DNA of 64,000 nucleotides from the sequence record OR770614.1; one strand, written 5' to 3'. Each line of letters starts with the position of its first letter. The first letter of the stretch is position 1. Made by a program: the position numbers and the translations under genes. The notes under the pieces are model-generated. The model ran no database searches. It saw only the letters and a list, made by a program, of their open reading frames with translations, and was not told the DNA's origin. Below, piece by piece: positions 27,017 through 44,608 of this stretch.

Positions 27017-27042
27017 ATTAACTTAATCTCCTTCTTTTAATT

Positions 27043-27261
27043 TTAAACTAATATAAAATCAATTATCTGTACATTGCTATCTCTAACATGTCTAAATTGA
27101 TCATCATAATTTTCTAAGTAATAATGAACTTTATTATCCAAGTCAGAGCTATTAGAGATAACCTCTTTAGCTCCACTTGGTAAATCTATTACTACTATTA
27201 ATATTTCTGGTTCTTTATTTAAATTTCTATATTTACTTTCAAATTTTTCTTTTAATGTCAT
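27043..27261 (-). CDS. small hypothetical protein between nrdE and nrdF
   Basis: Start corrected to MTLKEKF (ATG at 27261) behind a GGAGG RBS; 72 aa. Confidence 0.75.
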   Translation of the reverse strand: MTLKEKFESKYRNLNKEPEILIVVIDLPSGAKEVISNSSDLDNKVHYYLENYDDQFRHVRDSNVQIIDFILV

Positions 27262-27277
27262 ATTAAATACCTCCTGA

Positions 27278-30193
27278 TTAAATTGAACAAGATTCACATT
27301 CAACAATACCTTGAGAGTTTTCATCATGGTCTGGTGAATAAATACGAGTATAATACATAGATTTAATACCTTTACTATAAGCATAGTTACGTAATCTACT
27401 AATATCTCGTGTAGTTGTTTCTTTATCTAAAGAATCTTTTTTCCATTCATAAAGATCTGGATCAAGTTCATTCATTAAATAAATATTCATTGAAATACCT
27501 TGGTCTACATGATATTGAGCTTCTGAATATAAATCAATCATATCTCTCATATCTAATTGATAAGCATTTTTCTTAAAGTATTCAAAGTTTTCAGGATTAA
27601 TACCTGGTGCTGGATAGAAAGTAGTACCTGTTTTACCTTCAACACGTTCTTCAATTAATTCTACAATAGGATGAATAGAAGGTGACACTTCTCTAACATA
27701 ACCAATAGAACCATTAGGTGCTACAGCTAATCTATTTTGATTGTATAAACCATCCATTACAATATTATTCTTCAATTGTTCCCAATCAGAATCAGATGGA
27801 ATAAAGATATCTTCAAATAATTCTTTAACTTTTTCCGTACGTGGTTGAATATTTTTACCAATATAACGTTTATCAAAGTAAGAACCATCAGCATATTCAG
27901 TTTTTTCAAATAAATAGAATGATTCATCTTTTTCTTTAGCAATTTTATTTGATTCAAATAATGTCCAATAGTTTAATAACATGAAATAAATATTAGTGAA
28001 ATCTTTAGATTCTTCTGATCCATATTGAATATGATTTTCAGCTAAATAAGTGTGTAATCCCATTGCACCTAAACCAACTGTATGGAATAAATCATTAGCT
28101 TTTTTAACTGTAGGTACAGCTTCAATATTAGATTTTTCTGCTACTGAATTTAAACTTCTTAACATAGTCCCAACTGATTTACCAAAGTCTTCTGATTTCA
28201 TTAAACCAGGTACAATAGTTGAAGCTAAGTTACATGAAACATCTGTTCCTGTTTTAACGTATTGTTGATTATCGTCAACTAATGAAGGGTATTGTACTTG
28301 TAAAATTTCACTACATAAGTTACTCATTTTAATTGTACCATGACTAATTGGATTAGCTCTATTAGCAGTATCAATATTAATGATATAAGGATAACCAGAC
28401 TCTTGTTGTAATTTACTAATAGTAGTTTCTAAATCACGAGCATACATTTTTTCTTTACCAATACGTTTATCATCTACAAAGATATCATAGTAAGTATTAA
28501 AGTCAATACTATCGAAATCTAAATCATAATATTTTTTAATATCATATGGACTAAATGTATATAATGATTTATTTTCTTTAACTAGTTGATAATATTTATC
28601 TGGAACTGTTAAACCTAATGAAATAGTTTTTAATCTTACTTTTTCATCAGCATTTTCTTTCTTAGTATCTAAGAATTTTATTATATCTTTATGGAAAATG
28701 TTTAAGTAAAGTGCACCTGCACCATTTCTCTGCATTTATGTTAACTGTATTAATGTAATACAGATCAGACTATGTCTTATTATTCTTCTCTAATTCATAA
28801 TGGCATTTTTTACAAACTGTAATAACATTTTCATCATAATGTGCTTCATTAGGATCATTAAATTTTATTATAGGTATAATATGATGTATTTCTAAGTTTT
28901 CTTTAGAATTACAGTTAGTACACATATAATTATCTCTTTTCATGATCTCTTTTCTACGTCTTCTATAAGTTCCACCGTATCTTGTTGGATTTTCTTTAGA
29001 ATAAGTATAATTGGCACATCTATCAGAACAAAAGTATCTCTCTTTATTATTAGCAAAAGTTAAAGAAGGTCTAGAGAATGTTTTATTACAAGTAAAACAT
29101 TTTTCTTTTCTTAATTTTCTTTTAGCTATAACAGAAGCACATTTTTTTGAACAACTGTCAGATTCTTTATGAGATGTTCTAAATTCATTATTACAAATAG
29201 TACAAATTTTTAAATAACGTCTATTTTTACAATTTTGAGAACAATATACTTTAGATTTATATTTTGTTTCAAAATTCTTACTACAAACAGGACATTTTTT
29301 ATTTTCCATTATTATCACCTCAAATCATTATTTGAGAAGAATAATTAATATATTTAGTCGTTGAACAACTTTTTTAAGTTGATGCTAATTGGTTTAATAG
29401 AAACGTCTTAGCAATTAATATTATTTTTATTGAGCCATTAAAATTAACCCAATTGATTTACATATGATAAAGTATCTTCAAATACTTTCATAACTGGAAC
29501 TACTCCTGAAGCAGCACCTTCAACGCCTTTAATTGGATCATTGTCAGCACGTAAATTACTTAAAGATACTCCAATTCCTCCACCACGTTTACTTAATTGA
29601 GCAACGTTAGAAATATTTCTATAGATAGATGATAAAGAATCTTCCATAGTTAATAAGAAACAACTTACCAATTCTCCAGAACGTACTCTACCTGCATTAA
29701 GGAATGTAGGTGTAGCAGGTTGAAAAGTGCCTGTAATAATTTCATTAGCAATATTTCTAGCTAATTCTTCATCCCCATCAGCTAAATATAGAGCAACAAA
29801 TAAAATTCTATCTTCATATAATTCTAATAAAATTTCTCCTGCATCATCTTTCATTGCATACTGTTCATAGAATTTTTTAGCACCTAATAAACGAGTGAAT
29901 CTATGTTTATAAGCCATTAATTCTTTCATTAATCCTTTAATAAATTCAAAATCATAATTTTTGATCATATCTACATCAATATAATCATTATCGACTAAAT
30001 AGTTAATTTTTTCTTTATATGTTTTAAAGTATCTTACATTTTTATTTACATTATCTAAAAAGTATTTTTTAACTGAAGCTAATTCAAATTCTAAATCTAA
30101 ATTGCCATCTTTTAATTGTGAACCTCTTGAATTCAATTCATTGTATGAATAATCTTTAAACTTTTCTGAAGTTAAATCTATTTCTTTTGGCAT
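27278..30193 (-). CDS. nrdE: ribonucleotide reductase class Ib alpha subunit, split by a group I intron (exons 30193-29447 and 28732-27278; 733 aa spliced)
   Basis: PATPTFLNAGR, SCFL, NLCSEI, APNGS and C-terminal CESCSI; splicing restores the conserved NQLG|QR. Confidence 0.95.
28733..29446 (-). mobile_element. group I intron in nrdE (714 nt) with an HNH gene in L8
   Basis: P1 UUGGGU/GCUCAA with U.G; P AAUUGCU, Q AAUUAGCAUC, R GUUCAACGACUA, S AAGACAUAGUCU; ends in AAAUG; an 11-bp P8 (28780-28790 / 29334-29344) flanks the ORF. Confidence 0.92.
28770..29309 (-). CDS. intron-encoded HNH homing endonuclease with three N-terminal Cys4 zinc-finger repeats
   Basis: CxxC...CSxxC x3, then CTNC...LEIHH...N...CKKCH; GAGGTG RBS before MENKK. 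Confidence 0.9.
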   Translation of the reverse strand: MENKKCPVCSKNFETKYKSKVYCSQNCKNRRYLKICTICNNEFRTSHKESDSCSKKCASVIAKRKLRKEKCFTCNKTFSRPSLTFANNKERYFCSDRCANYTYSKENPTRYGGTYRRRRKEIMKRDNYMCTNCNSKENLEIHHIIPIIKFNDPNEAHYDENVITVCKKCHYELEKNNKT

Positions 30194-30213
30194 TTTATCC
30201 TATCTCCTTATAT

Positions 30214-30636
30214 CTATACTAATTCTAAATCTTTATTTATAATACTAGAGTTATTTAATTCTTTTAATTTTTTATTTAATTCAATATGTTCATTTTTGAT
30301 TCCGAATAATTCTATACCCATTAATAGTTCTAAATTAAAATCATTACATAATTTCTTAGGTGTAGTTAAGAATTCATAATTAAGATTTCTATTACCTGAA
30401 CCTACAATACCAATGCATCTACTTAGATTCATTCCATTACTAAAAAATTTTTTAACATGATTATAAATTGCATGTGGAGTATTATAAGATCCACATATAA
30501 GTATATAATCTTCATCCATTTCTATTTCTTCACAGTTATTTCTATTAAGTTCAATAGGTTCTCCAACTATTGTTCTGTCTAATTTATCTGCAAATTTTTT
30601 ACTATTACCTGTTAAAGTAAAATAAACTAATTTCAT
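30214..30636 (-). CDS. nrdI: flavodoxin-like RNR activator NrdI
   Basis: LVYFTLTGNSKKF, GIVGSGNRN, IELFG; directly upstream of nrdE. Confidence 0.9.
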   Translation of the reverse strand: MKLVYFTLTGNSKKFADKLDRTIVGEPIELNRNNCEEIEMDEDYILICGSYNTPHAIYNHVKKFFSNGMNLSRCIGIVGSGNRNLNYEFLTTPKKLCNDFNLELLMGIELFGIKNEHIELNKKLKELNNSSIINKDLELV

Positions 30637-30731
30637 GAAAATCTCTCCATTTAATTATATTTTCTAAATTCGAGGTTTAAAATAGATCCATCATAAGTTA
30701 TCCTTATGATAGATCATTTTAATTCATATAT

Positions 30732-30935
30732 TTAATATCCTACTTGACGATATTCCCATTTCCAAAAACTACCATCAGATTCAAAAGTATAATTCCAACC
30801 TTCAATACTGAAATTTTCTTTATAAGGTCCTTCGTATAAAGGTTTATCATTTAATTCTTCAACTTGACCATTTTGAATCATTTCAGAGAGTTTTTTATAA
30901 TCTACTGATTCTTTATTTTCAAAGATAGTATTCAT
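30732..30935 (-). CDS. hypothetical protein
   Basis: 67-aa ORF with a GAAAGGA RBS inside the nrd cluster. Confidence 0.7.
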   Translation of the reverse strand: MNTIFENKESVDYKKLSEMIQNGQVEELNDKPLYEGPYKENFSIEGWNYTFESDGSFWKWEYRQVGY

Positions 30936-30953
30936 AATGATAAATCATCCTTT

Positions 30954-31187
30954 CTATAATGTAGATAATACTTGATTTAATTTAGCTGGATCGTTTCCAA
31001 CTACAACGTCAGTACCGAAATCAATTACCGGTAAAGATTGATATCCTTTAGATAAAAGCTCTTCTTTAGCTTTTTCATCTTCATCAATATTAATTTCTGT
31101 ATATTCAATTCCTTGATTACCTAAAACCATTTTACTAAACATGCATTTACTACAATTATTCTTTGTATAAAATTTAATTTCTGGCAT
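30954..31187 (-). CDS. nrdH: glutaredoxin-like NrdH redoxin
   Basis: FYTKNNCSKC...GYQSLPVI. Confidence 0.9.
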   Translation of the reverse strand: MPEIKFYTKNNCSKCMFSKMVLGNQGIEYTEINIDEDEKAKEELLSKGYQSLPVIDFGTDVVVGNDPAKLNQVLSTL

Positions 31188-31225
31188 AACTAACTCTAAC
31201 CTCTTTCTATTTTAATTTTTATAAT

Positions 31226-31978
31226 TTATTTTTGGTATCTAATTAAGATACTATTTATTACTTTGATAAAATTTTCGTTCTGATCTAATTTATTGCCGAA
31301 TTTTCCAATATAATCAACATTTTCAGAAAGAGATTTTATATAATAAGGAGATTTTTCATAATTTTGCAACATGTATGAACCTAATGAACACATAAATTTA
31401 TACAATGAATTTGTTTCTTTGAAACTATCACTATCTAATGCATTTTTTAGATTTTCATAGATCTCTTCTAGATCAATATAATTGTATTCATTATTTTCAT
31501 TTCCATGAATTTTATTATGATTATAAATTTTCATATTTAATTTTTCATTTACTTTTTTAAGTTTATTTTCTTTAACAGGTAATTTACTAATAGTAATATT
31601 ATCTACCATATGTTTAGCTTCTTTACTATCTTTAATTTGTTCAATGATATTTTCAATTTGTTTAGTATCATTAATCTTTAAATCTTTTAAAGGTTTTAAT
31701 CTTTCAGGAATATCTTCATCTTTTTCAAAAGTTAAATCCCCATTAATGAAATCTAATTTCTCTTGATATCTTTGAACTTTAGAATCTACAGATAGTACAT
31801 CATTGATATCAATATTATCTTTACCATAATAAGTTGATAATTCTTTATTAATATCTTTCTTTTTTTCTTCGATTTCTTTTTCTAATTCTTCATTTTCTTT
31901 ATCAAATTCTTCCATCGCATTTTGTAAATCTTTTTCTAATTCTTCAACATATTTATTCTCTTCTACCATTTTTGACAA
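31226..31978 (-). CDS. hypothetical protein with an N-terminal coiled coil
   Basis: 250-aa ORF with an AAGGAG RBS. Confidence 0.8.
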   Translation of the reverse strand: MSKMVEENKYVEELEKDLQNAMEEFDKENEELEKEIEEKKKDINKELSTYYGKDNIDINDVLSVDSKVQRYQEKLDFINGDLTFEKDEDIPERLKPLKDLKINDTKQIENIIEQIKDSKEAKHMVDNITISKLPVKENKLKKVNEKLNMKIYNHNKIHGNENNEYNYIDLEEIYENLKNALDSDSFKETNSLYKFMCSLGSYMLQNYEKSPYYIKSLSENVDYIGKFGNKLDQNENFIKVINSILIRYQK

Positions 31979-31984
31979 ATCTCC

Positions 31985-32785
31985 TTATTTATATTTATTA
32001 ATGAAATAGTACTGTATTTCTCTAAATAATACATTATTATCTTCAAATGTTTCTCTTAATACATTAATAAGATTATTATCAAATCTAACATCAGTAATTG
32101 ATTGTTCTACTAACATTTTATCAATTTGATAATTATTCAATTCAGATTCTTCATCTAAAATTATAGTTTCAATAATATCTTCATTATCTCCAATATAAAT
32201 TCCTTCAATAATATCTGGAATAGAATAAATCATAGCTGTGTATTCGTTATCAATAGTTTTCTTTAAATTGTTATACGATAATGAAGTATTAATATCATCA
32301 TTTAAATTATCTTCATAAGTTTTAGATAAATGCACAATATTTCTTTCAATATAATTAATAAATAGATTATTAATCATTTCTTTTTTATTTAATACAAAGA
32401 AATAGTATAATGATTTAATATACTGAGCTTTATCTTCAACTAAAATATCTTCTGAGAACTCAATAGATAATTGATAAGTATCTTGAATTGATTCTAATAT
32501 TTCATTTAAAATATCATTATAAACTTCTTTAGTTCTATTTAAAATATCATTATCTTCTTTATATCTTTCTAATACAAAATTAAATCGGATTTCAAAGTAT
32601 TCAAAGAAATTCTTATGATGTTGATCAGTATAAAATTGCTTTGTATTAGATTCATGAATTTGATCTTTAATATTATCCACCATAATATCTTCAGAAATAT
32701 TCATAATAATTTCATCGTATTCTTCTTTAACCATTTCTAAATCATCTTTGTCATCAATTAAGTATGTCTTAGTCAAAATTTTCAC
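31985..32785 (-). CDS. hypothetical protein
   Basis: 266-aa ORF; ATATATTAT motif upstream on the minus strand (32811-32819). Confidence 0.8.
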   Translation of the reverse strand: MKILTKTYLIDDKDDLEMVKEEYDEIIMNISEDIMVDNIKDQIHESNTKQFYTDQHHKNFFEYFEIRFNFVLERYKEDNDILNRTKEVYNDILNEILESIQDTYQLSIEFSEDILVEDKAQYIKSLYYFFVLNKKEMINNLFINYIERNIVHLSKTYEDNLNDDINTSLSYNNLKKTIDNEYTAMIYSIPDIIEGIYIGDNEDIIETIILDEESELNNYQIDKMLVEQSITDVRFDNNLINVLRETFEDNNVLFREIQYYFINKYK

Positions 32786-32920
32786 TTCCCATTTATCTTT
32801 TTATTTTTATATAATATATTATTCTGACGAATAACTAAAATTTTCTTTTATCTTTTCTAAAATCAACTCTACTATACAACTTAGTTAATAACATTTTATA
32901 AAAATTTCCAATAAAATAGA

Positions 32921-32950
32921 GTAATGACGAAGTTAATCATCATTACTCTT
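32921..32950 (-). terminator. hairpin downstream of terL
   Basis: AGAGTAATGA / TCATTACTCT inverted repeat. Confidence 0.6.
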
Positions 32951-32957
32951 ATATATT

Positions 32958-35900
32958 TTATTTGAATAAATCCATAATACGTTTATTATTGTTATCTATT
33001 GGTTTTTGTTGTTGACCAAATATAGAATTACTCATATCATTTCCTTCAATAACACTATTGATACGTTTAATTGAAGCAATATCTTTTCTTCTAGCTTCCT
33101 GTTCTTTTTTCATTCCTTCTGCATTTTCACTGTTAGGTGAGAGTTTAGAACCATATTTAACTTTTACAAATTTATTAATATCCTTTTCATAATAATATGC
33201 ATATAAACAGAATAAATAAGACATCATTAAGTCGTCATGGCCACCTGGTGGATGGTCAATACGTCCTTTAATCATTTGTAACGATTTAATTTCTTGGAAA
33301 AGTGGTTTATTATTAATTAAATGTGGTTTTTCTTCAACAAGCATAGATAATATTTCATTTAACATTATATCACGAGATTTTTTAGTTGTATCAATACCAT
33401 ATCTACGAGTTTCTTTTTTAACTTTTTCAGTTTTACTATATCTAGACATTTCATTAAATAAACTTTTATTTTCTACTTGCTTTTCAGCTACACGAGTTTT
33501 AAGCGTATAGAATAAATTAGATTCTAAACCATCATAAGTTATCATATGATCAATTACTGTTAAACCTGCATAGTTACGTTCAGGTATTAATATAGCGTTA
33601 GGTATATAGAAACCAACCAATTCTTTAATTAATTTTCTGAATGTAGGTCCATTAATTACATTATTTTTAAAAGTCATTACTGGTTCCAAAGTAGCTGGAT
33701 CCACTACAGTAAACGCTGTATTATCTCGTCCTAAACCACCAGACATATCAATACCAATAAGCCAATTTTTCTCTGTAATATTATCCATATATTTAATCAT
33801 ATTTACATAATAAGTTCTACCATCAATATTAAATTCAAGAGTATTATATATTTCTTTATTAGCATACATAGATATTTCAGTCATTTGTTCTTCAGAGAAT
33901 AATGAATCATCAGAACTATAAGCCCATTCCAATAATATCTCACGTTTAACTGCTTCTAAAGAACCAATTTGTCTTTTTTGTTTTTCTAACCAATCTTCAT
34001 CTTTACCTAATTCTTTATATGAATATTCTATATACATGAATTCATTATTTGAATTATCTTCCATGTATTTTTCTAATTTAGAATTTCCTTCTTCTTCACT
34101 ATCAATAAAATAATCATATATTTTTTCATTCCATTGAGCTGCTTCATTCATTTGTTGAAAGAAAAATTGCCCTTGAGATGTGTCGAGAGTTGAAGGGGTT
34201 GTGGTGATAAGGAGTCCATAGGGAGAACCGTTTTCTTTTGCAATTCTAGAAGCTGTACTTATTGCTGGTCATTTATGTTAGCTGCATGGATTATCATGCA
34301 GATCAGACTATATCATAATCTTTTTAAGATTTAATAAATTTAGTCGTTGAACATTATTTAATGATGCTGATTGGTTTTTAAACTTTTCAGCAGTTAATAT
34401 TATTCATCATCTATATTTCTATAAAGATGGAGCCTTTTTACTCATTGCTTCAAACATTACTTGATTATGTGGTATAAACGCCCACTCATCAAGCCAAACC
34501 ATAGGTCATTTACGTTAAACTGCATGGATTATCATGCAGATCAGACTATATCATAATTTTAATAATTTTTTCATAGGGATAATTAATTCTTCATTTATTC
34601 TATTCTGATAAGGGAGACGTATCATATTTATTCCTTTACTTCTTATAAATTTATCTTTTTCATTATCTAATTTTTTTATATCTTCAAGAGTTCTTGTGCG
34701 TTTATTTCTTTTATCATTAATAAAAGTTCCATAACCTTTTATATGTCCTTTTCCATCTACTTCAACTACAGTATTTATTTTTTTAAAATAAAAATCAAAT
34801 CTAAAACTAGATCCTTCAAAAGTAACTTCATTCTCATATTCTATATTATTCTCTTGAAGAAATTCAATAATGGCAATTTCTCCTATACTTTTAGAGCATA
34901 CACTACATCTTTTTCTTTTAAGTATATCATCTGGTCTTGTTTTAAATTTGTGTCCACAATCATTACTCTTCAAATAGATATAATCTTTGCTTCTAGTATA
35001 TTCAGTTAACACATTAAATTTATTATATCCAAATATCATATCTAATTCACCTTGAAACTCTTCTGTTGTCTTTTTAGATAATTCTTGACTATCTAATATG
35101 ATATAATTTTCATCATTTATACATCTATTACAGTTTACTGAATTATACTTCTTTCTTTTATCCATTAGAGTAGAAGGCTTTGCAAAATATCTTATATTTC
35201 CACATTTTCCACAACGGAATCTACACTTTTTATTCATTCCATTGAATCCTTCAATATAAGTATAATTAAATCCGAACTTATCTTTTAATTCTATTAAAAA
35301 AGTTTCTTTACCTTTAGAATTCTTGGGTTTTTCTGAATATCTACAATCTTTTCTATTACAGAATTTTCTCTTTAATCTTAATTTTTCAGTAGGTAAGAAA
35401 AAATCTCTATCACATATATTACAATGACATTTAATTGGTTCTTTAGAATTTTTATACTCTCCCAGTATTTCAAATTTATCTCCATTAATATCTTTTATTT
35501 CTTTAAAAGTTTTATTTCTCTGTTCTATGAATTTTTCTTTACTTTTAACACCTTTAGGCATTTTATCCCTCCGTTATCGTACTGATAAAAGAATGTTAAC
35601 AGTAAAAATTATTAAAATTGATTTTATTTAGTCGTTGAACACTAATTAAAGTGATGCTGATTAACTTCATTATTAGTCTTCCAGCAATTAAAAATCTTTA
35701 TGCACTGCATCTACATACGGTGCTACCTCTTCCTGCTTTGTTTGCCGTAATACATTGTATGATATTCATACACACTAGACTATATCTTATAATATTAATT
35801 ATCTCTATATTTAGTCGTTGAACAATCAATTTGATTGATGCTGATTGGTTTAGTATCTTTTTCAGCAGTTAATAGAGTTTAATGAGAGCACGTATTTTAC

Positions 35901-36531
35901 TCTCAGCATTTGTTGGAGGTGATACTGTTTTTATTGTGTTGTTATTACTTGCTAAAGAAAATTCATTAATTTTGTCTCTATCATTTTTATCACCAAAGTT
36001 AGCTAATACATAATCCGGTAAACATTTCTCTTTGAATAGATTTTTTAATCGTTTAAGGTTTTCAGTAGTGTCCGAGTACGATTTATGTGTAAATAACATT
36101 GTATAGTTATTACCTACCAATAACATAATCCATGAATAATAACATACTGCAGAATATGTTTTATAGTGCTGACGAGGTAACATTATTGCAGTATCTAAAT
36201 TATGCAACATACAAAAAGTCATAGCTAAATTACCTCTATGAAGTTCATACATTACTTTTCCACCCGGAACCGGAACTCTGATAACTTCTCTTAAATAAAA
36301 CCATATATTAAGTTTAGCTTCCCTAATAACACGTGTTTTCATTTCATTATCTAGATCTTCATCCCAAGGATCAACACCAATTAATTTCTTATCATATAGA
36401 GTTAATGGCAATCCATAATTTTGTATATTATTATCTTTAAGTTCTTTAGCAACTTTTAAAAAGCTTACATTATTAGTTTTATAATCGTAATAAATTTTTT
36501 TCTTTAATTTTGTTATAGCCATAGTCTTCAT
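32958..36531 (-). CDS. terL: terminase large subunit in four exons (36531-35899; 35745-35717; 34506-~34441; ~34269-32958; ~679 aa)
   Basis: Walker A-like LPRQHYKT, GRG motif in exon 2, Walker B VWLDE in exon 3, coupling motif ITTTP, nuclease IGIDMSGG and HDDLMM. Confidence 0.9.
34270..34439 (-). mobile_element. ORF-less group I mini-intron 3 of terL (~170 nt)
   Basis: P AACUGCUGAAA, Q AAUCAGCAUC, R GUUCAACGACUA, S AUGAUAUAGUCU, td-like P9 CUGCAUG...CAUGCAG, ends in AAAUG; the exact junction is ambiguous by 1 nt. Confidence 0.88.
34507..35716 (-). mobile_element. group I intron 2 of terL (1210 nt) with an endonuclease gene in L8
   Basis: P/Q/R elements at 35625-35685, S/P9 at 34507-34557; a perfect 16-bp P8 (35604-35619 / 34555-34570) flanks the ORF. 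Confidence 0.92.
34551..35561 (-). CDS. intron-encoded homing endonuclease: repeated zinc ribbons plus a C-terminal PD-(D/E)xK / Vsr-like domain
   Basis: Three CxxC zinc-ribbon units; SIGE...FRFDFY...VEVDGKGH; GGAGG RBS; the stop codon overlaps the intron S element. Confidence 0.85.
   Translation of the reverse strand: MPKGVKSKEKFIEQRNKTFKEIKDINGDKFEILGEYKNSKEPIKCHCNICDRDFFLPTEKLRLKRKFCNRKDCRYSEKPKNSKGKETFLIELKDKFGFNYTYIEGFNGMNKKCRFRCGKCGNIRYFAKPSTLMDKRKKYNSVNCNRCINDENYIILDSQELSKKTTEEFQGELDMIFGYNKFNVLTEYTRSKDYIYLKSNDCGHKFKTRPDDILKRKRCSVCSKSIGEIAIIEFLQENNIEYENEVTFEGSSFRFDFYFKKINTVVEVDGKGHIKGYGTFINDKRNKRTRTLEDIKKLDNEKDKFIRSKGINMIRLPYQNRINEELIIPMKKLLKL
35746..35898 (-). mobile_element. ORF-less group I mini-intron 1 of terL (153 nt)
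   Basis: P1 UGAGAGU/GCUCUCA; P, Q, R and S (AAGAUAUAGUCU) elements; terminal G; removal joins NAES to ANKAGRG in frame. Confidence 0.92.
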
Positions 36532-36545
36532 TCACTTCTTTCTTA

Positions 36546-37715
36546 CTATCTTGTCTTAGTATTAAGCCTATTAGAATATTTTATTATTCTTTGAATTTCA
36601 TCTAATTGTTTCTTGAGTTCTTTTTTAACTTCATTAGAATTATTATTGTTACTAATTTCAAATTTTAATGTCTTAATAACTGCATCAATTGAATCTGTTG
36701 GATAATCTTTATAACTTTTAATAAAACCACTCATAGGATATAAAAGTCCTCTCATAGCTTTAGCTATTAAGTTATTAGGTCTTTTTTCAGATTTCATTCT
36801 AAATGCTTTATACACTAAATCATAAAATTTAACCATTTCTACAGAATATCCATAAAGAGCAGGTAATTGGTTGGCAGATCTTTCTGAAAGATTATAATCC
36901 ATAGTAGTTTTTCTATTGAAACTTGCACTTGTTAGTAACATTCCTGTTCCCATAAATGAACCCATTGATATGCTAGCACCTATAAATACAGCAGTTAAAC
37001 ACATTACTAATGTTGACATTGCAAGAATCATAGGAGCCGCTAATACTCTATTTCTTCTAGTGTCAGCTTCTATTTCTTTAGTGTACTTAAACTGTACTGG
37101 TTTATTATCTTTATATTTGAGTTCGAATGTAGGAGTTTTACCACCAGAGAGTACATTAATTTCTACAGGGAAAAATAAATTATGACCTATTTCATGTAAT
37201 AATAAAAAAGTATACATTCTACCATTAAGAGTAGTAAATTCTTTTTGACCTGATTCTTTCTTTTCTATAAAATATCTCAATGAAGATAATTCAATATTCA
37301 CTTCAATTTCTCTAGGTTTAGAATAGTAAATACCATTCTTTTCTTCAATAACAATTTTAGTGATTCCATCTGTAATATTTCTAATTTCTTCAGGTTTAAT
37401 TAATGTGTGTGCTACTGAACCTACCCTAAATTTATCTCTTCCACGCTTATCCGCTTCAATAAATTTTAATTTCATATTAGTGTTAAATAATTTCTTAGCA
37501 ATATCTGATATTCTTTTTGCAATATCATTGTATTCATTCTTATTAATTACATCAAAATCAGATTTTTCAAAATTATACTTACTAATTAATGAATCAAATT
37601 CATCATCTATCTCTCTTAGTAATGAAGTATTTTTACCAAAGTTAAATGCATCTTCATTGATGTTCATTATTTTATTTATTTTATTTAATTGTATTTCTTC
37701 TTTTAAAGATACCAT
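36546..37715 (-). CDS. HEXXH zinc-metalloprotease-like protein with a hydrophobic segment (probable virion head protein)
   Basis: LLLHEIGHN, a long hydrophobic stretch, then SERSANQ. Confidence 0.7.
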   Translation of the reverse strand: MVSLKEEIQLNKINKIMNINEDAFNFGKNTSLLREIDDEFDSLISKYNFEKSDFDVINKNEYNDIAKRISDIAKKLFNTNMKLKFIEADKRGRDKFRVGSVAHTLIKPEEIRNITDGITKIVIEEKNGIYYSKPREIEVNIELSSLRYFIEKKESGQKEFTTLNGRMYTFLLLHEIGHNLFFPVEINVLSGGKTPTFELKYKDNKPVQFKYTKEIEADTRRNRVLAAPMILAMSTLVMCLTAVFIGASISMGSFMGTGMLLTSASFNRKTTMDYNLSERSANQLPALYGYSVEMVKFYDLVYKAFRMKSEKRPNNLIAKAMRGLLYPMSGFIKSYKDYPTDSIDAVIKTLKFEISNNNNSNEVKKELKKQLDEIQRIIKYSNRLNTKTR

Positions 37716-37730
37716 ATAATTTTCCTTTCT

Positions 37731-38846
37731 TTATATATCAGGATTGAAATTATCGGACAATTTCACTAATAATTTTATGTCATTTATAGTTTTTTTAATT
37801 TCTTTTTTGGTTTCGTTATCATTATTGTTATTACTTAATTCTTTTTCTAATATTCTTATATCACTTTCAACTATATCAGTTTCCCAATCTTTATAATCTC
37901 TTATAAAAAGCTTAATAGGATATAATATTTTATTTTTAATAGCATTAAACTTATTGTTCTTATAAGTAGGAGGTTTAAAACCATGAATTTTATCTATTTC
38001 TCTTACAATTATGGTTGTTTTAACTAATTCTCTAGAATATCCATAGAGTGTAGGTAAATAATCTGCAGTTCTCTCAACTAAATTATAATCTTTCTTGTCT
38101 TTATTATTTTTTACACTTCTATTTAAAAAGACAGAAGAAACTAATCCGGTTCCAATACCTATTGGAGCATTTACAATACTTAAAGATAAAAAGAAAATTG
38201 TCATCGCAGATACCATAGGAATTGCATACTTTTTATTTCTTCTTTCATCATCCTCAATATCTTTAGAATAAGAAAATATTTGAGGTGGGTTATTTTTATA
38301 TTTTAATTCAAATTTAGGAGTTTCTCCTTTATTTAATACATTCAATTCTAAAGGTAAGATTAAATTATGACCTATTTCATGTAATAAGACAGATGTTAAT
38401 AAACTACCATCAAATAAATTTTCAATTTTATTATTACTTTTTCTCAATAAAATACAGTATCTTATAAAATTCAATTCCATTTCAACTTTTATTTCAGTAG
38501 GTTTAGCATAATATATTCCATTTTTTTCTTCTGAAACTATTTTCAATAGACCTAAAGCTATATCTTTAGCTTGCTTTTCATTCCATTTAGTTTGTCCTAT
38601 AAAATTAGATGAATAAAACATTACATCATCTAAATCTAAGAAACTAAATTTTAATTTAGTGTTAAATAACTTATTACATAAATTCTCAATTTCTTTTTCT
38701 TTTTTGGTAAAATTAAAATTGACAAATTCTTCTTTATCTAAATCATATGAATCTATTAATTCATTAAATATTTTGTCAACATCTTTTAATGTATTTTTGT
38801 TTCTGCTATTTATAAACATGTCTTCTTTTAATAATATTTTAGTCAC
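37731..38846 (-). CDS. HEXXH zinc-metalloprotease-like protein, tandem paralogue
   Basis: VLLHEIGHN, a hydrophobic stretch, VERTADY; clear similarity to the 36546 ORF. Confidence 0.7.
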   Translation of the reverse strand: MTKILLKEDMFINSRNKNTLKDVDKIFNELIDSYDLDKEEFVNFNFTKKEKEIENLCNKLFNTKLKFSFLDLDDVMFYSSNFIGQTKWNEKQAKDIALGLLKIVSEEKNGIYYAKPTEIKVEMELNFIRYCILLRKSNNKIENLFDGSLLTSVLLHEIGHNLILPLELNVLNKGETPKFELKYKNNPPQIFSYSKDIEDDERRNKKYAIPMVSAMTIFFLSLSIVNAPIGIGTGLVSSVFLNRSVKNNKDKKDYNLVERTADYLPTLYGYSRELVKTTIIVREIDKIHGFKPPTYKNNKFNAIKNKILYPIKLFIRDYKDWETDIVESDIRILEKELSNNNNDNETKKEIKKTINDIKLLVKLSDNFNPDI

Positions 38847-38864
38847 CTACTTTTTATAAAATAA

Positions 38865-38893
38865 ACCCATACACCTCAGAGAGATGTATGGGT
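38865..38893 (-). terminator. terminator after the major capsid gene
   Basis: ACCCATACA / TGTATGGGT hairpin with a minus-strand T-run. Confidence 0.7.
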
Positions 38894-38920
38894 ATATAAA
38901 TAACAAAAGTAAAGTTACTC

Positions 38921-40516
38921 TTAACGAGCGTATACTGAACCGTTGTTGTTTTTGATTGTAATACGACCAATGATCGGAACAAATGATTCAACTGTATATC
39001 TACGAGTCATCATCATGTTAGGAACATTAGGGTTACGAGTATTCAAGTATCCTCCACCATTTACAACGTTGAATGTGTAAGGGTAGAACATGAATGTTTT
39101 ATAGTTGTCTTGTTGAGGAATTGCAATAATAGTCAATTCACCTTGACGAACTAAGTCAGAACCGATAATACGGTAGTTAGCAGTACCTGAAGCAGCACCT
39201 AATGAATAGTTAATTTTGATTCCGTTAGAGTAAGAATCTTCAGTACCACCATTAAATGTCCAAGAAACGTTAGGGATTAAACGAACGTCAACTGGGTTAC
39301 CTACGATAACAAATTGTACATCGTAAAGTTTGTAATCATTTTTCATTGATTGTGTAGTATGGTCAATTACTTCACGTAGACCTTCTAACCAATCTTTAGG
39401 GTGAGCACTGTAATCACTATGTGGATAAACATCGAAGCTGAAGTGATATTTAGCATCAGTTTCTTCGTATTCGTGATCTAAGAATTCAATGATATCTAAG
39501 TCAACTTTTTGACTAGATAATTGAGACATTGTTTCAGATAAACGAGCAACTCCATCGATATCATAAGTAGCTTTCATATCTTGAATTACTTCAAGAGGTA
39601 CTGTAGCCTCGATGTGTTGAGCTGTATCGATAGTGATATCTTTACGATCTAATCCAAGCTCAATGTTAGTAGCTGAAGTATGTTGTTCAGAAGCTACATA
39701 ACCTTTAATTTTAATTGCTTCTAATTTACCAGAAGTTGAAGCTAAAGCTAAAGTACCGTTAGAAACATCAACTTTACCTAATACTGTATCAACAGCAACT
39801 TCACCGTCACCATTTGTAGGGTATTTAACTTCTGCCATTAGAGAGTCATTTTCCATTTTAATAACTTGAGAACCTAATTCAACAAATCCTTTTTCGTTTG
39901 TACGTACATCAAAAGAATCGCTCCATTTAGCTTCTACAACTTTGAATTTACGGTCAACACGATCAATGCCTTTACGAACTTCTTTACCTTCTTTTAAGCC
40001 ATCGAATAAATCGTAAGCTTCAACTTTACCACCAGAAATTGTAACTTCTTCTTTAAGAGGAACTAATCCTACTAAAGTTTCAGGTGTGTTATTAATTGAT
40101 TCAGGTAATGCATGTTTGTTTCCATCAGCATCTACAACGTAAGGTGTTAAGATTGGCACTGTGAATTGTGGTTTATTAGCAACTTGAGTTGGTAAAGCTT
40201 CAGTTAAAGCTAAACGAGCCCAAAGTTTAACTAAGATAGGCATAGATAATGAAGCATAAGGTTGGATAGGTCCCATTGAAGACTCTAATAAGATTTCTTC
40301 ACGAGTATTATCTAACATACTTTCTAAAGAAAGCTGCTCCTCTTCATCAAAACCTTCTAATAATTGATCTTTATAACTTTCAAATACTACGTCATCAGTA
40401 GCAATTGAAGCGAAGTCATTACCAACTGTACTTAATTTGTACTGTTCGTTGATATTTTGTTCGATATCCTCTAAGAGTTTAGAGAATTCATCTTTAATTC
40501 TATTTGCACTCAACAT
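38921..40516 (-). CDS. major capsid protein precursor
   Basis: 531 aa with strong codon bias; acidic N-terminal propeptide ending in LLE-SS; between protease/scaffold genes and terL; late motif at 40577-40588. Confidence 0.75.
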   Translation of the reverse strand: MLSANRIKDEFSKLLEDIEQNINEQYKLSTVGNDFASIATDDVVFESYKDQLLEGFDEEEQLSLESMLDNTREEILLESSMGPIQPYASLSMPILVKLWARLALTEALPTQVANKPQFTVPILTPYVVDADGNKHALPESINNTPETLVGLVPLKEEVTISGGKVEAYDLFDGLKEGKEVRKGIDRVDRKFKVVEAKWSDSFDVRTNEKGFVELGSQVIKMENDSLMAEVKYPTNGDGEVAVDTVLGKVDVSNGTLALASTSGKLEAIKIKGYVASEQHTSATNIELGLDRKDITIDTAQHIEATVPLEVIQDMKATYDIDGVARLSETMSQLSSQKVDLDIIEFLDHEYEETDAKYHFSFDVYPHSDYSAHPKDWLEGLREVIDHTTQSMKNDYKLYDVQFVIVGNPVDVRLIPNVSWTFNGGTEDSYSNGIKINYSLGAASGTANYRIIGSDLVRQGELTIIAIPQQDNYKTFMFYPYTFNVVNGGGYLNTRNPNVPNMMMTRRYTVESFVPIIGRITIKNNNGSVYAR

Positions 40517-40700
40517 AATTTTTTCTGCTCCTTTTCAAATATATTAGCGTGTAGTTTTATATTATTAATTTTATTATATAAATTTGTTAAGAAATAAAAT
40601 AACCATTATATTCAAGGGTATTTTTACTTTCATATGTTATTGTTATTAAATTTAAAAAGAATAATAAAACTATTATTAAAAGTAATTAAATTCATTTATT

Positions 40701-41390
40701 TTACTTTTTACTACGCTTTTTTGTACTTTCTAACTTATTGTATTCTTTTAAATAATTGTCAAATATTTCTTTGTAAGTATTTTCAAATTTTTTATATAAC
40801 TTCTCAGATTTATCTACATCGACAATATTTATAAATTTATTGTTAAATAAATTTATATTATCTTTAAGTTGATCAAGAGATTTTGTAGTTAATTCAGTTA
40901 TATCAAACATATCTTTTCTCTCTGAATCTGAAAAATTATCCATATTTCTATCATTGATAATGTAATTAAATTTGTCCATTACATCTTTTAATTCAATTAA
41001 TTTATTAAATATTTGTAATTTTAAAAACTTATCTGAATTACTTTCTTTGGGTTCTTCAGGTGTTTCTTCTGGAGTTTCTTCAGGTGTTTCTTCTGGATTA
41101 TCTGTGTCAGTTTCTTCAGCTTCAGGTTGTTCAGGATCACTATCTAATTCATCTTCATTTTCTTCTTGATCTTCTGTAGAATCATCACTAGAATCATCAT
41201 TAGAATTATCTTCTTCAGTTTCTTCGTTATTCTCTTCTTCTGATGAAGTTGATTCAGTATCATCTAATGAATTCTGATCTTGATTATCTTCATCACCTTC
41301 AGCTTCATTAAGAATATTTTGTTTCATTAGTTTATTTATTGATTCAGTTAGTAAATCTCTATTAATATCCATAGTCATTACCACTGTCAT
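40701..41390 (-). CDS. acidic head / scaffold-like protein
   Basis: Highly acidic N-half with (PEET)3 repeats; LxE sites (LLTE, LNE); lies next to the capsid gene. Confidence 0.6.
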   Translation of the reverse strand: MTVVMTMDINRDLLTESINKLMKQNILNEAEGDEDNQDQNSLDDTESTSSEEENNEETEEDNSNDDSSDDSTEDQEENEDELDSDPEQPEAEETDTDNPEETPEETPEETPEEPKESNSDKFLKLQIFNKLIELKDVMDKFNYIINDRNMDNFSDSERKDMFDITELTTKSLDQLKDNINLFNNKFINIVDVDKSEKLYKKFENTYKEIFDNYLKEYNKLESTKKRSKK

Positions 41391-42399
41391 TTACATCTCC
41401 ACGAGAGATAGCATTTTTAGTTTTATCTATAGCTTTCTTTTGGAAATTTGCTTTTTTCAATTGACCTTCTAAGTCTGATTTTAATATTCTTAATTCTTTT
41501 CTCTTTTGTTCATTATCAGTTGAATCGATTTTATTTTCTAATGATTGAATTCTTTCTTCTAGTACAATAATTAATCTATTAAGTTCACTATTTTTAGTAC
41601 TATTATACACAATAGCAACCAATAATCCTAATAAAGCAGTTTTAGCTTTACCAATAACACCAGCACTTACTTCTAATCCAATACAGAAGATTATTGCTGT
41701 TAAAATAGCTCTTACAAAACGAATTCTATTTGCTTTAGCTAATTGTTTGTCATCCATATTTTTAGATGAAGCAGTAGCTTTCTTAACAGAACCAATTAAT
41801 TTATTTAAATTCTTTTCAGCAACTTTAGGTTCTTTAGAGGTTTCAAAGCTACTATCAAGACCATCAAGATAATCTTCATCATCGTCATCATCATAAGCTT
41901 CATTAAGATAATTCATACTACCTTCCATTAAGAAGTTAATAACAGCTTTTCTTTCTAATTTAGAACCAGCAGGACTTTCAGCTAAAGCTACAGTTAATTG
42001 TTTAAAATTAAATTCTACACTTTTATTTGAACTAAAATCTTCTTTATATAAACTATCAATATAACCATTATTAGGAATACGATTATTAATATAAAGTGTA
42101 TTATATCTATCTTTAAGAGTTTCTATTTTATGAAGAACCATATTTATTGCCATTTCAGATTGTTCATTTTCAATTTCGTATCTTTCTAATGAATCTTTAA
42201 TACCTACTAGATATTTTACAATTTTTCTAATTTGATCATTCGTAAAACTATCAATATTAGCATACTTCTCAATATCAACTAAATAATCATAAGCTTCATT
42301 AGGAAAAGAATTTTCATCCGTTTGTTCTTTAATATTAAGTAATATATCTTTTACTTCTTCAAAACTTTTCAAAGATTTTCCTCCTATCATATATTTCAT
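41362..42399 (-). CDS. probable internal head protein with hydrophobic helices and a coiled coil
   Basis: YLNEAY processing-like site; hydrophobic FVRAILTAIIFCIGL...LLGLLVAIVY. Confidence 0.6.
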   Translation of the reverse strand: MKYMIGGKSLKSFEEVKDILLNIKEQTDENSFPNEAYDYLVDIEKYANIDSFTNDQIRKIVKYLVGIKDSLERYEIENEQSEMAINMVLHKIETLKDRYNTLYINNRIPNNGYIDSLYKEDFSSNKSVEFNFKQLTVALAESPAGSKLERKAVINFLMEGSMNYLNEAYDDDDDEDYLDGLDSSFETSKEPKVAEKNLNKLIGSVKKATASSKNMDDKQLAKANRIRFVRAILTAIIFCIGLEVSAGVIGKAKTALLGLLVAIVYNSTKNSELNRLIIVLEERIQSLENKIDSTDNEQKRKELRILKSDLEGQLKKANFQKKAIDKTKNAISRGDVNDSGNDYGY

Positions 42400-42486
42400 T
42401 AATCTAATAAAAGATTGTTAAATTCAGAAGAATAACATAGAAATATTCTTAATTTACAATCAAAATTTGAAAGGAAGTATAAATAG

Positions 42487-43673
42487 ATGTCTAAAGATAT
42501 TAAAGCTTACATTATTAATGAATCTAATACAACTTCTCAACCAGAAGTAGTTCAAGATAATAACAAATCAGTTAGATTCATTGCTGAATTACAAGAAGCT
42601 GATAGACAAAACCGTAATGGTCGTGTTTATCGTAAAGATGTTATACAAAGTGGATTAGATAGTCCAGTAGTACAAGAAAAATTAGCAAGAAGAACTTTTT
42701 ATGGTGAGTTTTAGGTTAAAATGGCTCACGTTAAATTATATTAATTGCTGAAATCTTATTTAAAGTAATCAGCATCAACTTAATACAAGTTGTTCAACGA
42801 CTAAATATATAACTTAATTTAATTAAGAAGATATAGTCTAATCTATATAAAATATAAATATAGATAATATAAGCAGGTCATCCTTTAAGTGATGAACCTA
42901 AACGTCAAATGTATATTGATCAACGTAATATTTCTCATATTATCACTAGAACTTGGTGGAATGGTAATAAATTAATGGGAGAAGTAGAAACAGCTCAAAC
43001 AGCAGCTGGTAAAGATATGAAAGGTTTAATTGGACAAAAGTCTGATGTATCCTTCTCAATGCGTGGTTTTAGTAAAATAGAAAGAAAACCTAATGGTGAA
43101 GTAGAAGTTACTAAACCTTTAAGATTAATCTGTTACGATAAATAACTCTGTCGCTTCTTAAAGCAATTTAAGTCGAATAATATTATTAATTGCTGAAAAG
43201 AATTCATTAAATTAATCAGCATCCTCAAAAAGAGGTTCAACGACTAAATATAATATACTTAATTTATTAAGTAATGATATAGTCTAGTCTATATGAAATT
43301 CATATAGTTAATATAAACGTGGGTAGTAATTCCATCACATCAAGATTCTTATATCCAAAATATAATTTCAGAGAATCATAATAATTACAATACTAGTGAT
43401 TTACAAATGGTTAATGAATCAATTGATATGTTTTCTAACGGTAAAGTTACAGAATTTTCTCCTAGAGAAGTTTTAACTTATATTAAAGAAAATTCAGACA
43501 ATATCAAATATATCGCTGAAGATATGGGATTTGATAAAGCTGATGAATCTAATATCATTTACGATAAAGGATCTCAATTAGCTTCAATTAAAGAAAGTAA
43601 TAAAACTATTAAAGTTTTCTTAGAAGAATCTGTTCTTAATGGACTTGATGATTTCTATAGAAACTTTAAATAA
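42487..43673 (+). CDS. prohead core protease (T4 gp21-like) in three exons (42487-42709; 42874-43139; 43320-43673; 280 aa)
   Basis: LQEAD..NRNGRVY, spliced GE-SGHP, FSMRG and YD-WVVIPSH; the exon lengths sum to a multiple of 3. Confidence 0.9.
42710..42873 (+). mobile_element. ORF-less group I mini-intron 1 of the prohead protease (164 nt)
   Basis: P1 GUGAGU/GCUCAC; AAUUGCUGAAA, AAUCAGCAUC, GUUCAACGACUA, AAGAUAUAGUCU; terminal G. Confidence 0.92.
43140..43319 (+). mobile_element. ORF-less group I mini-intron 2 of the prohead protease (180 nt)
   Basis: P1 CGAU/GUCG; the same P/Q/R/S elements; terminal G before the conserved Trp codon. Confidence 0.92.
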
Positions 43674-43696: not shown

Positions 43697-44410
43697 ATGA
43701 TAACTAATACAGAAGTACTTAATTATATAGAACGTGATACAGGATTTCTGTTTAATGAGTTAGAACTAAATCCTGATGAGATTATTAAAACAGTAGAAAG
43801 ATTTACAATTCCTACTTTTAGTAAATTTCATCCTAAACAAGAAAGAATAATAGTAAAGCCTGAAGATAAAGTAGAAGGAACTCAGAATGTTTATTATATT
43901 GATTCACCAAATCCAATAGTTAATATTAATAGAGTGATTGGTGCTAATAACAATATTTCTAATTTAACTGGGTATGCTGGTAGTATGAGTCCTTATGCAG
44001 GTTTTATGATGGGCTCACCTATTGACTCTCAAATGATGGCAGATTTAATGGCTATTAATTTAAATCCATCTACATTTAGATATCTTCATCCTAATAAAAT
44101 AGAGATAATGAATGGATCTGTTATGAGTACAACTAATCTATTAATAATTGCAAATACTTATCATGATAAACATTTTGGTTCAATACCAAATAATATGCAT
44201 GATTACTTTTTAGAATTAGCTTCATATGATGTTCAAATGTCATTATACTCTATGAGAGGTAGATTTCAAAATTTACAAACTACTTTTGGTGAATTAAATC
44301 TAAATATGGATGATTTAAGAGATGCTAGAGAAAAAAGAAGAGAATTAGTTGAAAAAATGGAAAATAACTCTATTTATAATTCTAATAGAAAAAAATTATT
44401 TTTCGGATAA
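43697..44410 (+). CDS. head completion / neck protein (T4 gp13-like)
   Basis: C-terminal FGELNLNMDDLRDAREKRRELVEKM pattern and position in the head module. Confidence 0.5.
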   Translation: MITNTEVLNYIERDTGFLFNELELNPDEIIKTVERFTIPTFSKFHPKQERIIVKPEDKVEGTQNVYYIDSPNPIVNINRVIGANNNISNLTGYAGSMSPYAGFMMGSPIDSQMMADLMAINLNPSTFRYLHPNKIEIMNGSVMSTTNLLIIANTYHDKHFGSIPNNMHDYFLELASYDVQMSLYSMRGRFQNLQTTFGELNLNMDDLRDAREKRRELVEKMENNSIYNSNRKKLFFG

Positions 44411-44414
44411 TAAA

Positions 44415-44446
44415 ATCCCAATACCTATTAATTTAGGTATTGGGAT
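44415..44446 (+). terminator. terminator hairpin
   Basis: ATCCCAATACCTA / TAGGTATTGGGAT inverted repeat. Confidence 0.75.
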
Positions 44447-44608
44447 ATATTTTTAGGATAAGGGAGTAATGGATATGGATAAAATTAAAGAACTTTGTAT
44501 AAGTAATTTCATTATAACTATACGCTAATTTATTACTTAAAAAGGAATAAATTATAGAAAAATAAATTTCTATAAAAATTTGTTACAATACTAATTTATA
44601 TCATAAAT

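Follow-up and report, generated by a model that had tools for sequence, protein, structure and literature searches.

The first 64,000 nucleotides (nt) of the genome of the Staphylococcus jumbo phage vB_StaM_PB50 (OR770614.1, 273.7 kilobases (kb); bases 1-64000, hereafter the window) contain six very short elements, I1 to I6, which interrupt nrdE, terL and the prohead protease gene and which, judged by sequence and predicted fold, are very probably genuine group I introns, members of a miniaturised lineage. Within the AR9/PBS1-like jumbo phages, PB50 falls into the MarsHill/Machias/S6 group; its GC content is ~25%. A 16.5-kb region of the window matches the PB50 genome with 100% identity at unchanged coordinates. 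The elements would be transcribed inside the nrdE, terL and prohead protease pre-mRNAs and their removal would join the exons in frame, by what we infer from family membership to be the standard group I splicing chemistry. The catalytic skeleton appears to be kept: P1 formed with the 5' exon, P3 and P4 of 6 base pairs (bp) each, P5 of 3-4 bp, P6 of 4-5 bp, P7 with the guanosine-binding site, P8 of 4-7 bp holding the two endonuclease open reading frames (ORFs), P9 of 6-7 bp and the terminal G. Lost would be P7.1/7.2, the extended P9 region and usually P2.

Intron boundaries, shared motifs and fold

Boundaries were set by comparison with intron-free alleles, and the PB50 exons were joined at U(-1)/terminal-G pairs. 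In phage PALS_2 the nrdE and prohead protease genes are uninterrupted and terL is continuous over the sites of I4, I3 and I2. The introns and the exons that they separate lie as follows (arrows mark splice junctions).

28733-29446, minus strand: I1 in nrdE, 714 nt, core of 171 nt without the L8 insert, P1 UUGGGU↓/GCUCAA, terminal G at G28733
34270-34440, minus strand: I2 in terL, 171 nt, ORF-less, P1 GAGU/GCUC, 9-bp P2
34507-35716, minus strand: I3 in terL, 1210 nt, core of 177 nt without the L8 insert, P1 GCACCGU↓/GCAGUGC
35746-35898, minus strand: I4 in terL, 153 nt, ORF-less, without P2, P1 GAGAGU↓/GCUCUC
42710-42873, plus strand: I5 in the prohead protease gene, 164 nt, ORF-less, without P2, P1 GUGAGU↓/GCUCAC
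43140-43319, plus strand: I6 in the prohead protease gene, 180 nt, ORF-less, P1 CGAU↓/GUCG, P2 present
29447-30193, minus strand: nrdE exon 1 (GenBank, in-silico splicing, Pfam)
27278-28732, minus strand: nrdE exon 2 (GenBank, in-silico splicing, Pfam)
35899-36522, minus strand: terL exon 1 (in-silico splicing)
35717-35745, minus strand: terL exon 2, a 29-nt micro-exon encoding ANKAGRGST(V), colinear with PALS_2 ...ES↓ANKAGRGSTV↓PMVW...
34441-34506, minus strand: terL exon 3, 66 nt, encoding PMVWLDEWAFIPHNQVMFEAM(R) and including the Walker-B-like LDE
32958-34269, minus strand: terL exon 4 (in-silico splicing)
42487-42709, plus strand: prohead protease exon 1 (in-silico splicing)
42874-43139, plus strand: prohead protease exon 2 (in-silico splicing)
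43320-43673, plus strand: prohead protease exon 3 (in-silico splicing)

Spliced in silico, PB50 NrdE reads ...YVNQLG↓QRNGAGA..., as in the uninterrupted PALS_2 nrdE and with no gap, and the Pfam RNR barrel profile continues from positions 1-74 in exon 1 to 75-523 in exon 2 with nothing lost at the I1 junction. The four terL exons yield a protein of 676 amino acids (aa) that reads ...TNAES↓ANKAGRGSTV↓PMVWLDEW... and aligns without gaps to the PALS_2 TerL pieces, and the spliced protease aligns without gaps to the 280-aa PALS_2 protein. A first-pass annotation of the window had placed the introns in essential genes from which they must be removed; the intron-free alleles in PALS_2, Madawaska and AH12, with which the exons are colinear, bear this out. 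The terminal G that it had described is present in 6/6 introns at the 3' junction that restores the frame. Its U.G-capped P1 stands for I1, I3, I4, I5 and I6, in which P1 pairs with the 5' exon and carries a U.G wobble at the splice site; in I2 the wobble is offset by one base, frame and a conserved Arg putting the exon end at G34441. Likewise, the ORF-less lengths of 153, 164 and 180 nt were correct and the 170 nt given for I2 becomes 171 nt, since a 170-nt excision frameshifts terL. A cut between the 12-bp and 16-bp P8 stems of I1 and I3 gives exactly the core lengths of 171 and 177 nt that had been stated. Skipping of terL exon 3, from the I3 5' site to the I2 3' site, was considered and rejected: the product is in frame but loses the Walker-B segment.

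The GenBank record of PB50 lists the gene pieces as separate coding sequences (CDSs), and the RNA polymerase subunits of these phages are naturally split over several genes (Korn et al.), both of which would suit a reading in which the elements are inert, decayed remnants that no longer splice and the genes are expressed as separate polypeptides that assemble. We regard this as very improbable, because terL exons 2 and 3 (29 and 66 nt) have neither a start codon nor a ribosome-binding site and one RNA polymerase micro-exon has only 18 nt, the exon frames are exactly colinear with intron-free alleles, the insertions split catalytic motifs (NADFDG↓D, D↓TDS, DAD↓DDG), and compensatory covariation is strong. 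In the prohead protease gene, the GenBank CDS 42487-42714, named 'terminase large subunit', is exon 1 read on into the intron, and CDS 42909-43145, named 'homing endonuclease', is the exon 2 region read on into the intron. The Machias protease gene is annotated with two introns; it contains two full-length model matches only 11 nt apart (L003:18473-18634 and 18646-18804), a pair that may represent an extra intron and an 11-nt micro-exon.

All six elements contain the R motif GTTCAACGACTA, which has exactly six exact occurrences in the 64 kb:

29355, 34341, 35629 and 35812, minus strand: exact R matches
42792 and 43235, plus strand: exact R matches

With up to two mismatches R was observed eight times in the window, and shuffled sequences had a mean of 3.25 with 0/100 reaching 8. 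The Q motif AATYAGCATC also has six exact matches, one per R and 11-15 nt 5' of it. The first-pass annotation had all six elements share P, Q, R and S sequences; this is exact for Q and R, while P is exact in 5/6 elements (one mismatch in I3) and S departs by one mismatch (AUGAUAUAGUCU) in I2, I3 and I6, its copies in I1, I4 and I5 being exact. When mismatches were allowed, the P and S patterns were not enriched in the 64-kb window relative to shuffled sequence. The strands of the elements agree with those of their host genes, four minus and two plus.

RNAalifold applied to the six cores recovered P4 (P:Q), P6, P7 (R:S) and P9 with compensatory changes, and single-sequence minimum free energy (MFE) folds of I4 and I5 contained P1, formed with the exon, and P4-P9, with z = -2.2 (I4) and -3.5 (I5). 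From the six elements a covariance model was built, with helix P3 left out of the model. In its alignment of 26 matches from the PB50 genome, 97.2% of the cells pair as compared to 82.2% in shuffled alignments, double-sided changes number 64 versus 14.5, and slid registers pair at 22-48%. The pseudoknot helix P3, evaluated by anchored extraction, pairs at 110/114 positions (shuffled partners 73.4 +/- 4.2; slid registers 34-53) with 14 different strand sequences among family members. The P3-P8 domain with its P3/P7 pseudoknot is thus present by pairing and covariation, and compensatory covariation of this strength indicates that the RNA fold is under selection. The segments are short: 16-20 nt from P4 to P4', 12-17 nt from Q to R, 29-47 nt from R to S, an interval taken up by P3' and P8, and 31-36 nt from S to the terminal G. 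These lengths leave no space for P5abc, P7.1/7.2 or P9.1/9.2, as had been proposed. That the introns mostly lack P2 applies to I1, I3, I4 and I5; I2 and I6 have a P2 hairpin.

The motifs could in principle be chance features of another element, such as a dispersed intergenic repeat, a group II intron or a bulge-helix-bulge intron. No Rfam family matches the elements, the very AT-rich genome inflates chance AT-rich matches, and the mismatched S and P patterns do not exceed shuffles. Set against this are six exact R 12-mers with 0/100 two-mismatch shuffles reaching the observed eight, the ordered P-Q-R-S arrangement, the covarying P3/P7 pseudoknot, the terminal G, a P1 with each 5' exon, and homology to AR9 introns that the Rfam model RF00028 does detect. 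We consider this explanation effectively refuted by the covariation and the empty sites, with next to no probability left to it. A weak model match at 7233-7331 on the plus strand (18.8 bits, E = 0.75) comprises a P4-like hairpin only and is probably due to chance. At 44407-44451, between convergent genes, lies what looks like an intrinsic terminator, a GC-poor hairpin with a U-run behind it; this hairpin is the source of spurious microRNA and snoRNA matches in Rfam.

Two of the six introns hold an ORF in L8, and I2, I4, I5 and I6 hold none:

28770-29309, minus strand: HNH endonuclease ORF in L8 of I1 (Pfam PF01844 HNH, E = 7e-7; 'HNH protein' in GenBank)
34551-35561, minus strand: 336-aa homing-endonuclease-like ORF in L8 of I3 (annotated 'homing endonuclease' in PB50 and Machias)

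Perfect P8 stems of 12 bp (I1, ATTATTCTTCTC/GAGAAGAATAAT) and 16 bp (I3) flank the inserts. The I1 ORF overlaps the 3' strand of P8 with its 3' end and stops in P7' (the S element), the I3 ORF in J8/7-P7'. The I3 product is similar to a PBS1 homing endonuclease and has in Pfam only a weak treble-clef zinc-finger match (DUF4379, E = 6e-4, under the cut-off).

The 5' splice site of I2

By homology with I4 and I5, P1 of I2 is GAGU/GCUC with its wobble at U34440, and the 3' end reads AAAUG↓ as in I1 and I3. Canonical U(-1)/terminal-G removal of 170 nt frameshifts terL and leads to a stop after nine codons; the Arg at the I2 site is kept in PB50 only if 171 nt are taken out (U34440 to G34270). This Arg is conserved via three different codons. 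At the I2 site, the intron-free alleles read ATGAGACCAGCA in Madawaska, ATGCGTCCA in AH12 and ATGAGACCT in PALS_2, and the LY01 and MarsHill alleles, also intron-free at this position, read ATGAGGCCT. Machias has the identical I2 junction, so that the anomaly is not a sequencing error. An exhaustive scan for canonical alternatives returned 59 in-frame U/G pairs, and among the 16 pairs nearest to the reference product length P1 has at most four contiguous pairs and none keeps the conserved MRPAxSTAS. How the ribozyme would cut one base 5' of the I2 wobble is unexplained.

The 3' parts of I2 and I3 (P9 and tail; 34270-34308 and 34507-34545) are nearly identical, and in each case the exon continues with ACC. 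This likeness suggests recombination between the neighbouring introns, which may be linked to the one-base anomaly of I2. In terL of LY01 (L119) and MarsHill (L120), a different, canonical mini-intron is found 4 nt downstream of the I2 site (AGGCCU↓GAAAUU...AAAAG↓GCAGU); with distinct mini-introns 4 nt apart, two lineages have invaded almost the same spot. A second candidate for an exon ending in G(-1), at L004:45661 in the non-virion RNA polymerase beta gene, was rejected: the intron-free PALS_2 gene puts the terminal G 5 nt upstream of the model-aligned G, which makes this intron canonical with 168 nt. By motif reasoning, L004:47239 likewise appears to use a G 4 nt upstream, so that the junction would read ...GFTN↓EDGIVVSE.

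A 22-member family in PB50 and its relatives

The covariance search of the whole PB50 genome gave 26 matches corresponding to 22 introns, so that what had been described as a family of six is the in-window part of a much larger one. Its host genes in PB50 are both RNA polymerase subunit sets, DNA polymerase, gyrB, terL, the protease gene and nrdE. Besides the ORF-less lengths in the window (153, 164, 171 and 180 nt), we obtained 142, 147, 149, 149, 150, 165, 168, 173, 177, 179, 180, 183, 183 and ~194 nt outside it, where the provisional boundaries were set by hand from P1 pairing, reading frame and conserved motifs. The smallest member, with ~142 nt, is located in the exonuclease domain of DNA polymerase (PB50 238153-238294, minus strand; L007:24153-24294); P2 and P9 are both missing from it, and only 13 nt follow P7'. 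P9-less forms of 139-143 nt also occur in the IMG/VR loci L080 and L057.

In three PB50 copies, two of them in the window, L8 houses an endonuclease ORF; a fourth copy (L004:26134) adjoins one. The latter lies in the non-virion RNA polymerase beta-prime gene (PB50 90134-91796; L004:26134-26285 and ORF 26282-27796), where a 504-aa 'homing endonuclease' ORF just upstream of the core seems to be placed in the 5' (P1/P2) part and not in L8. A 149-nt member (PB50 254789-254937, minus strand; L007:40789-40937) splits the universal RNA polymerase motif NADFDG↓D and has a C at -1 opposite the guide A (GAUGGC/ACCAUC), which looks like a natural replacement of U.G by a C.A wobble. In the virion RNA polymerase beta gene (L005 ~14250-14288), an 18-nt exon (ACUUACAUGUUAAGAGGU) stands between adjacent mini-introns. 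For L005:16229-19783 and 36938-38491, both outside the window, no link to the introns was found.

BLAST with I5 located between 9 and 31 sites in the genome of each of six related phages; in PALS_2, S6, DC4 and SA1 it located none. With the compact covariance model, the 15-kb syntenic locus of PALS_2 contained no family member and that of Machias gave eight matches. The Q...R core was found on more than 110 IMG/VR stretches, and in 621 kb of such loci the compact model gave 69 matches, 45 of them distinct and mostly of 139-200 nt, many on contigs of 200-400 kb; contigs of 360-400 kb account for many of the IMG/VR hits. By these matches, uncultivated viral contigs, many of them of jumbo-phage size, commonly carry similar compact introns. 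The Q...R core motif is also widespread in bacterial genomes; the compact model had no match in 604 kb of bacterial Q...R loci, a result to be read with the caveat that an AT-rich model may disfavour GC-rich hosts.

The closest full-size counterparts are the introns of AR9/PBS1 and the large terL intron of PALS_2 and Machias. They share the P/Q/R/S core with the minis (UUAAUUGCUGG, AAUCAGCA, GUUCAACGACUA, GAUAUAGUCU), occupy similar host genes, split catalytic motifs and carry endonuclease ORFs in peripheral loops. In contrast to the 142-194 nt of the minis, the introns of AR9 and PALS_2 measure at least ~250-310 nt without ORFs; a long P7.1/7.2-type insert separates their R and S, and their P9 region is extended. 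The large terL intron follows ...LLITTTP (PALS_2, L002 ~5985-7490; Machias, L003 ~9130-10640), is not found in PB50, and has a ~366-aa endonuclease ORF between Q and R (in P6) as well as P7.1/7.2-like and long P9 segments. Other full-size counterparts are those in T4 td, nrdB and sunY and in Twort orf142; the T4/Twort/AR9 type is subgroup IA2. Since the P7.1/P7.2 insertion, the IA2 hallmark, is not present in the minis, these are IA2-like in core sequence without that hallmark, and they probably derive from a full-size phage IA-type intron core that was stripped.

Other small group I RNAs differ in composition, setting or activity. The Azoarcus intron is GC-rich and thermostable and has two tetraloop-receptor contacts and a P2. 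This pre-tRNA-Ile intron (IC3), the customary small model ribozyme, has 205 nt and is, as are the minis, compact and ORF-less with most peripheral domains gone (PMC13168695). The phage minis are 25-63 nt shorter, have 20-28% GC and reside in protein-coding genes; all four ORF-less introns of the window fall below 205 nt, in agreement with the first-pass annotation. The GIR1 lariat-capping ribozyme (~180-190 nt) has a similar size and a group I-derived core, but it performs branching instead of splicing and lies inside a twin-ribozyme intron of eukaryotic rDNA; in the PB50 minis P1 involves the exon and the terminal G stands at the exon junctions, as for splicing. Doudna and Szostak (1989) are said to have engineered sunY mini-ribozymes in which an IA2-type core was cut to ~180 nt and was still catalytic. 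Those were artificial deletions assayed in trans at raised Mg2+, whereas the PB50 minis are natural, lie in cis and go down to ~142 nt. In a report on Jug gut jumbo phages, ~18.5 small group I introns per genome split terL, nrdD and DNA polymerase genes, have a mean length of ~206 nt, match covariance models and are read by the authors as 'internal group I-like ribozymes', with metatranscriptome support for splicing in 37/76 (Sci Adv 2026, PMC12880540). The hosts of these phages are Bacteroides/Phocaeicola, and the introns are reported by their size, without structural description (PMC12880540).

Splicing competence, spread and implications

A bolder reading, which we put forward tentatively and hold to be somewhat doubtful as a whole, is that among natural group I ribozymes competent for catalysis the minis are the smallest (142-165 nt in P2-less members, one of them without P9), that an AT-rich bare core splices in vivo at ~22 sites per genome, that the family spread by guide-directed reverse splicing and not by endonuclease homing, and that I2 uses a non-canonical 5' site one base upstream of the wobble. 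Several observations weigh against the group I reading of the six elements itself. RF00028 (Intron_gpI), whose use with Infernal had been suggested along with the first-pass annotation, finds 0/6 minis at the gathering threshold or at E <= 10, although it recovers the AR9 introns used as positive control with 102, 77 and 76 bits; we take this miss to be a limit of the model and not a biological criterion. The Pfam search of the terL and protease exon pieces matched nothing, so that these gene names rest on GenBank annotation, PBS1 similarity and motif reading. I2 breaks the U(-1) rule, its exon ending at G34441 and the wobble U34440 being the first intron base. The predicted MFE is -28 to -37 kcal/mol at 37 C (-34 to -46 at 30 C) at a GC content of 20-28%, and inspection of the alignments by eye, with no dedicated scan, revealed no conserved tetraloop-receptor motif. 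Given this low predicted stability and the lack of a tetraloop-receptor seen by eye, autonomous folding is not assured. Finally, P1 pairing is needed for survival in any case, and the recurrence of guides and targets described below is therefore partly forced and not independent proof of reverse splicing.

The folding question leads to an alternative that we take seriously without favouring it, namely that, as the first-pass annotation had suggested, the cores retain group I chemistry but, being stripped and AT-rich, would not fold productively alone at physiological Mg2+ and would need a protein or chaperone in vivo. A maturase-like endonuclease, an RNA chaperone or the translating ribosome are plausible helpers by analogy with CYT-18/Mrs1, which act on deficient mitochondrial introns; a dedicated phage splicing factor we consider rather unlikely. 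To our knowledge, all characterised phage group I introns self-splice in vitro, and the engineered sunY mini-ribozymes of ~180 nt were reportedly active without protein, both of which count against a helper. Dependence on one would be in line with the low GC content and MFE values given above, with a P5 of just 3-4 bp, with the loss of P9 in some family members, of P2 in most copies and of P7.1/7.2 and the P9 extensions in all, features that the full-size AR9/PALS_2 introns keep. These phages are reported to plaque only below 37 C (Korn et al.), and according to a review the splicing of many group I introns in vivo depends on maturases or chaperones (PMC3984707). On the other hand, an ORF lies in or next to just three or four of the 22 copies, and Pfam detected no maturase-type (LAGLIDADG) protein among the ORFs of the window introns. 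The 22 sites lie in all essential modules, including replication, transcription and packaging genes, which would make a helper a general requirement; a single splicing control over packaging and head maturation, as envisaged in the first-pass annotation, has no specific support.

The reading that the minis spread by their guides draws on the recurrence of guide/target pairs in unrelated genes. CGAU↓/GUCG occurs five times (protease, gyrB, virion RNA polymerase beta-prime and DNA polymerase), GAGAGU↓/GCUCUC twice (terL and virion RNA polymerase beta-prime), UUGGGU↓/GCUCAA twice (nrdE and virion RNA polymerase beta), and GUGAGU↓ or GUGGGU↓/GCUCAC twice in the PB50 family, and the P1-P2 segments are near-identical among members that share one guide. 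Reverse splicing needs a match of 4-6 nt (PMC3984707). A target of this length suits reverse splicing and is far too short for endonuclease homing, which makes ectopic guide-directed insertion the best reading for the ORF-less copies. The family appears to have spread into non-homologous genes at sites matching the 4-6-nt internal guide, a pattern that fits reverse splicing or guide-constrained ectopic insertion, and the L8 endonuclease ORFs would serve classical homing.

Introns in these phages had been predicted before from protein alignments only (Korn et al.), in line with the statement in the first-pass annotation that intron-rich staphylococcal jumbo phages had been reported; the TerL of these phages 'could not be confidently reconstructed' in that study, and another paper states that there are 'no introns' in a related phage. 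That RF00028 is blind to all copies explains the 'no introns' report, the mislabelled PB50 protease exons and the unreconstructed TerL. A preprint that mentions MarsHill and 'intron' was set aside, as it deals with the MarsHill reverse transcriptase and not with these introns. A literature search for natural group I introns below 170 nt found no earlier report, which is not proof of absence. In the searchable literature, we likewise did not find a structural definition of a 142-194-nt lineage without P7.1/7.2, the failure of RF00028 to see it, a TerL of four exons, the recurrence of guide/target pairs or the I2 anomaly.

The interest of these introns to ribozyme and phage-genome specialists is, in our estimate, moderate to high. 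The four-exon TerL reconstruction fixes the PB50 terL annotation. With 142-165 nt, ~25% GC and no peripheral braces, well under the size of the Azoarcus intron, the minis provide a natural measure of the minimal group I RNA, and the ~20 paralogues per genome form a ready-made mutational series. Very small self-splicing cassettes could be of use in RNA circularisation and split-gene designs, and the recurring guide/target pairs in unrelated genes offer a good system for studying spread by reverse splicing in a DNA virus. If protein-free self-splicing is true, the minimal natural group I ribozyme would be redefined; if the minis do not self-splice, a dedicated phage or host splicing factor awaits discovery.

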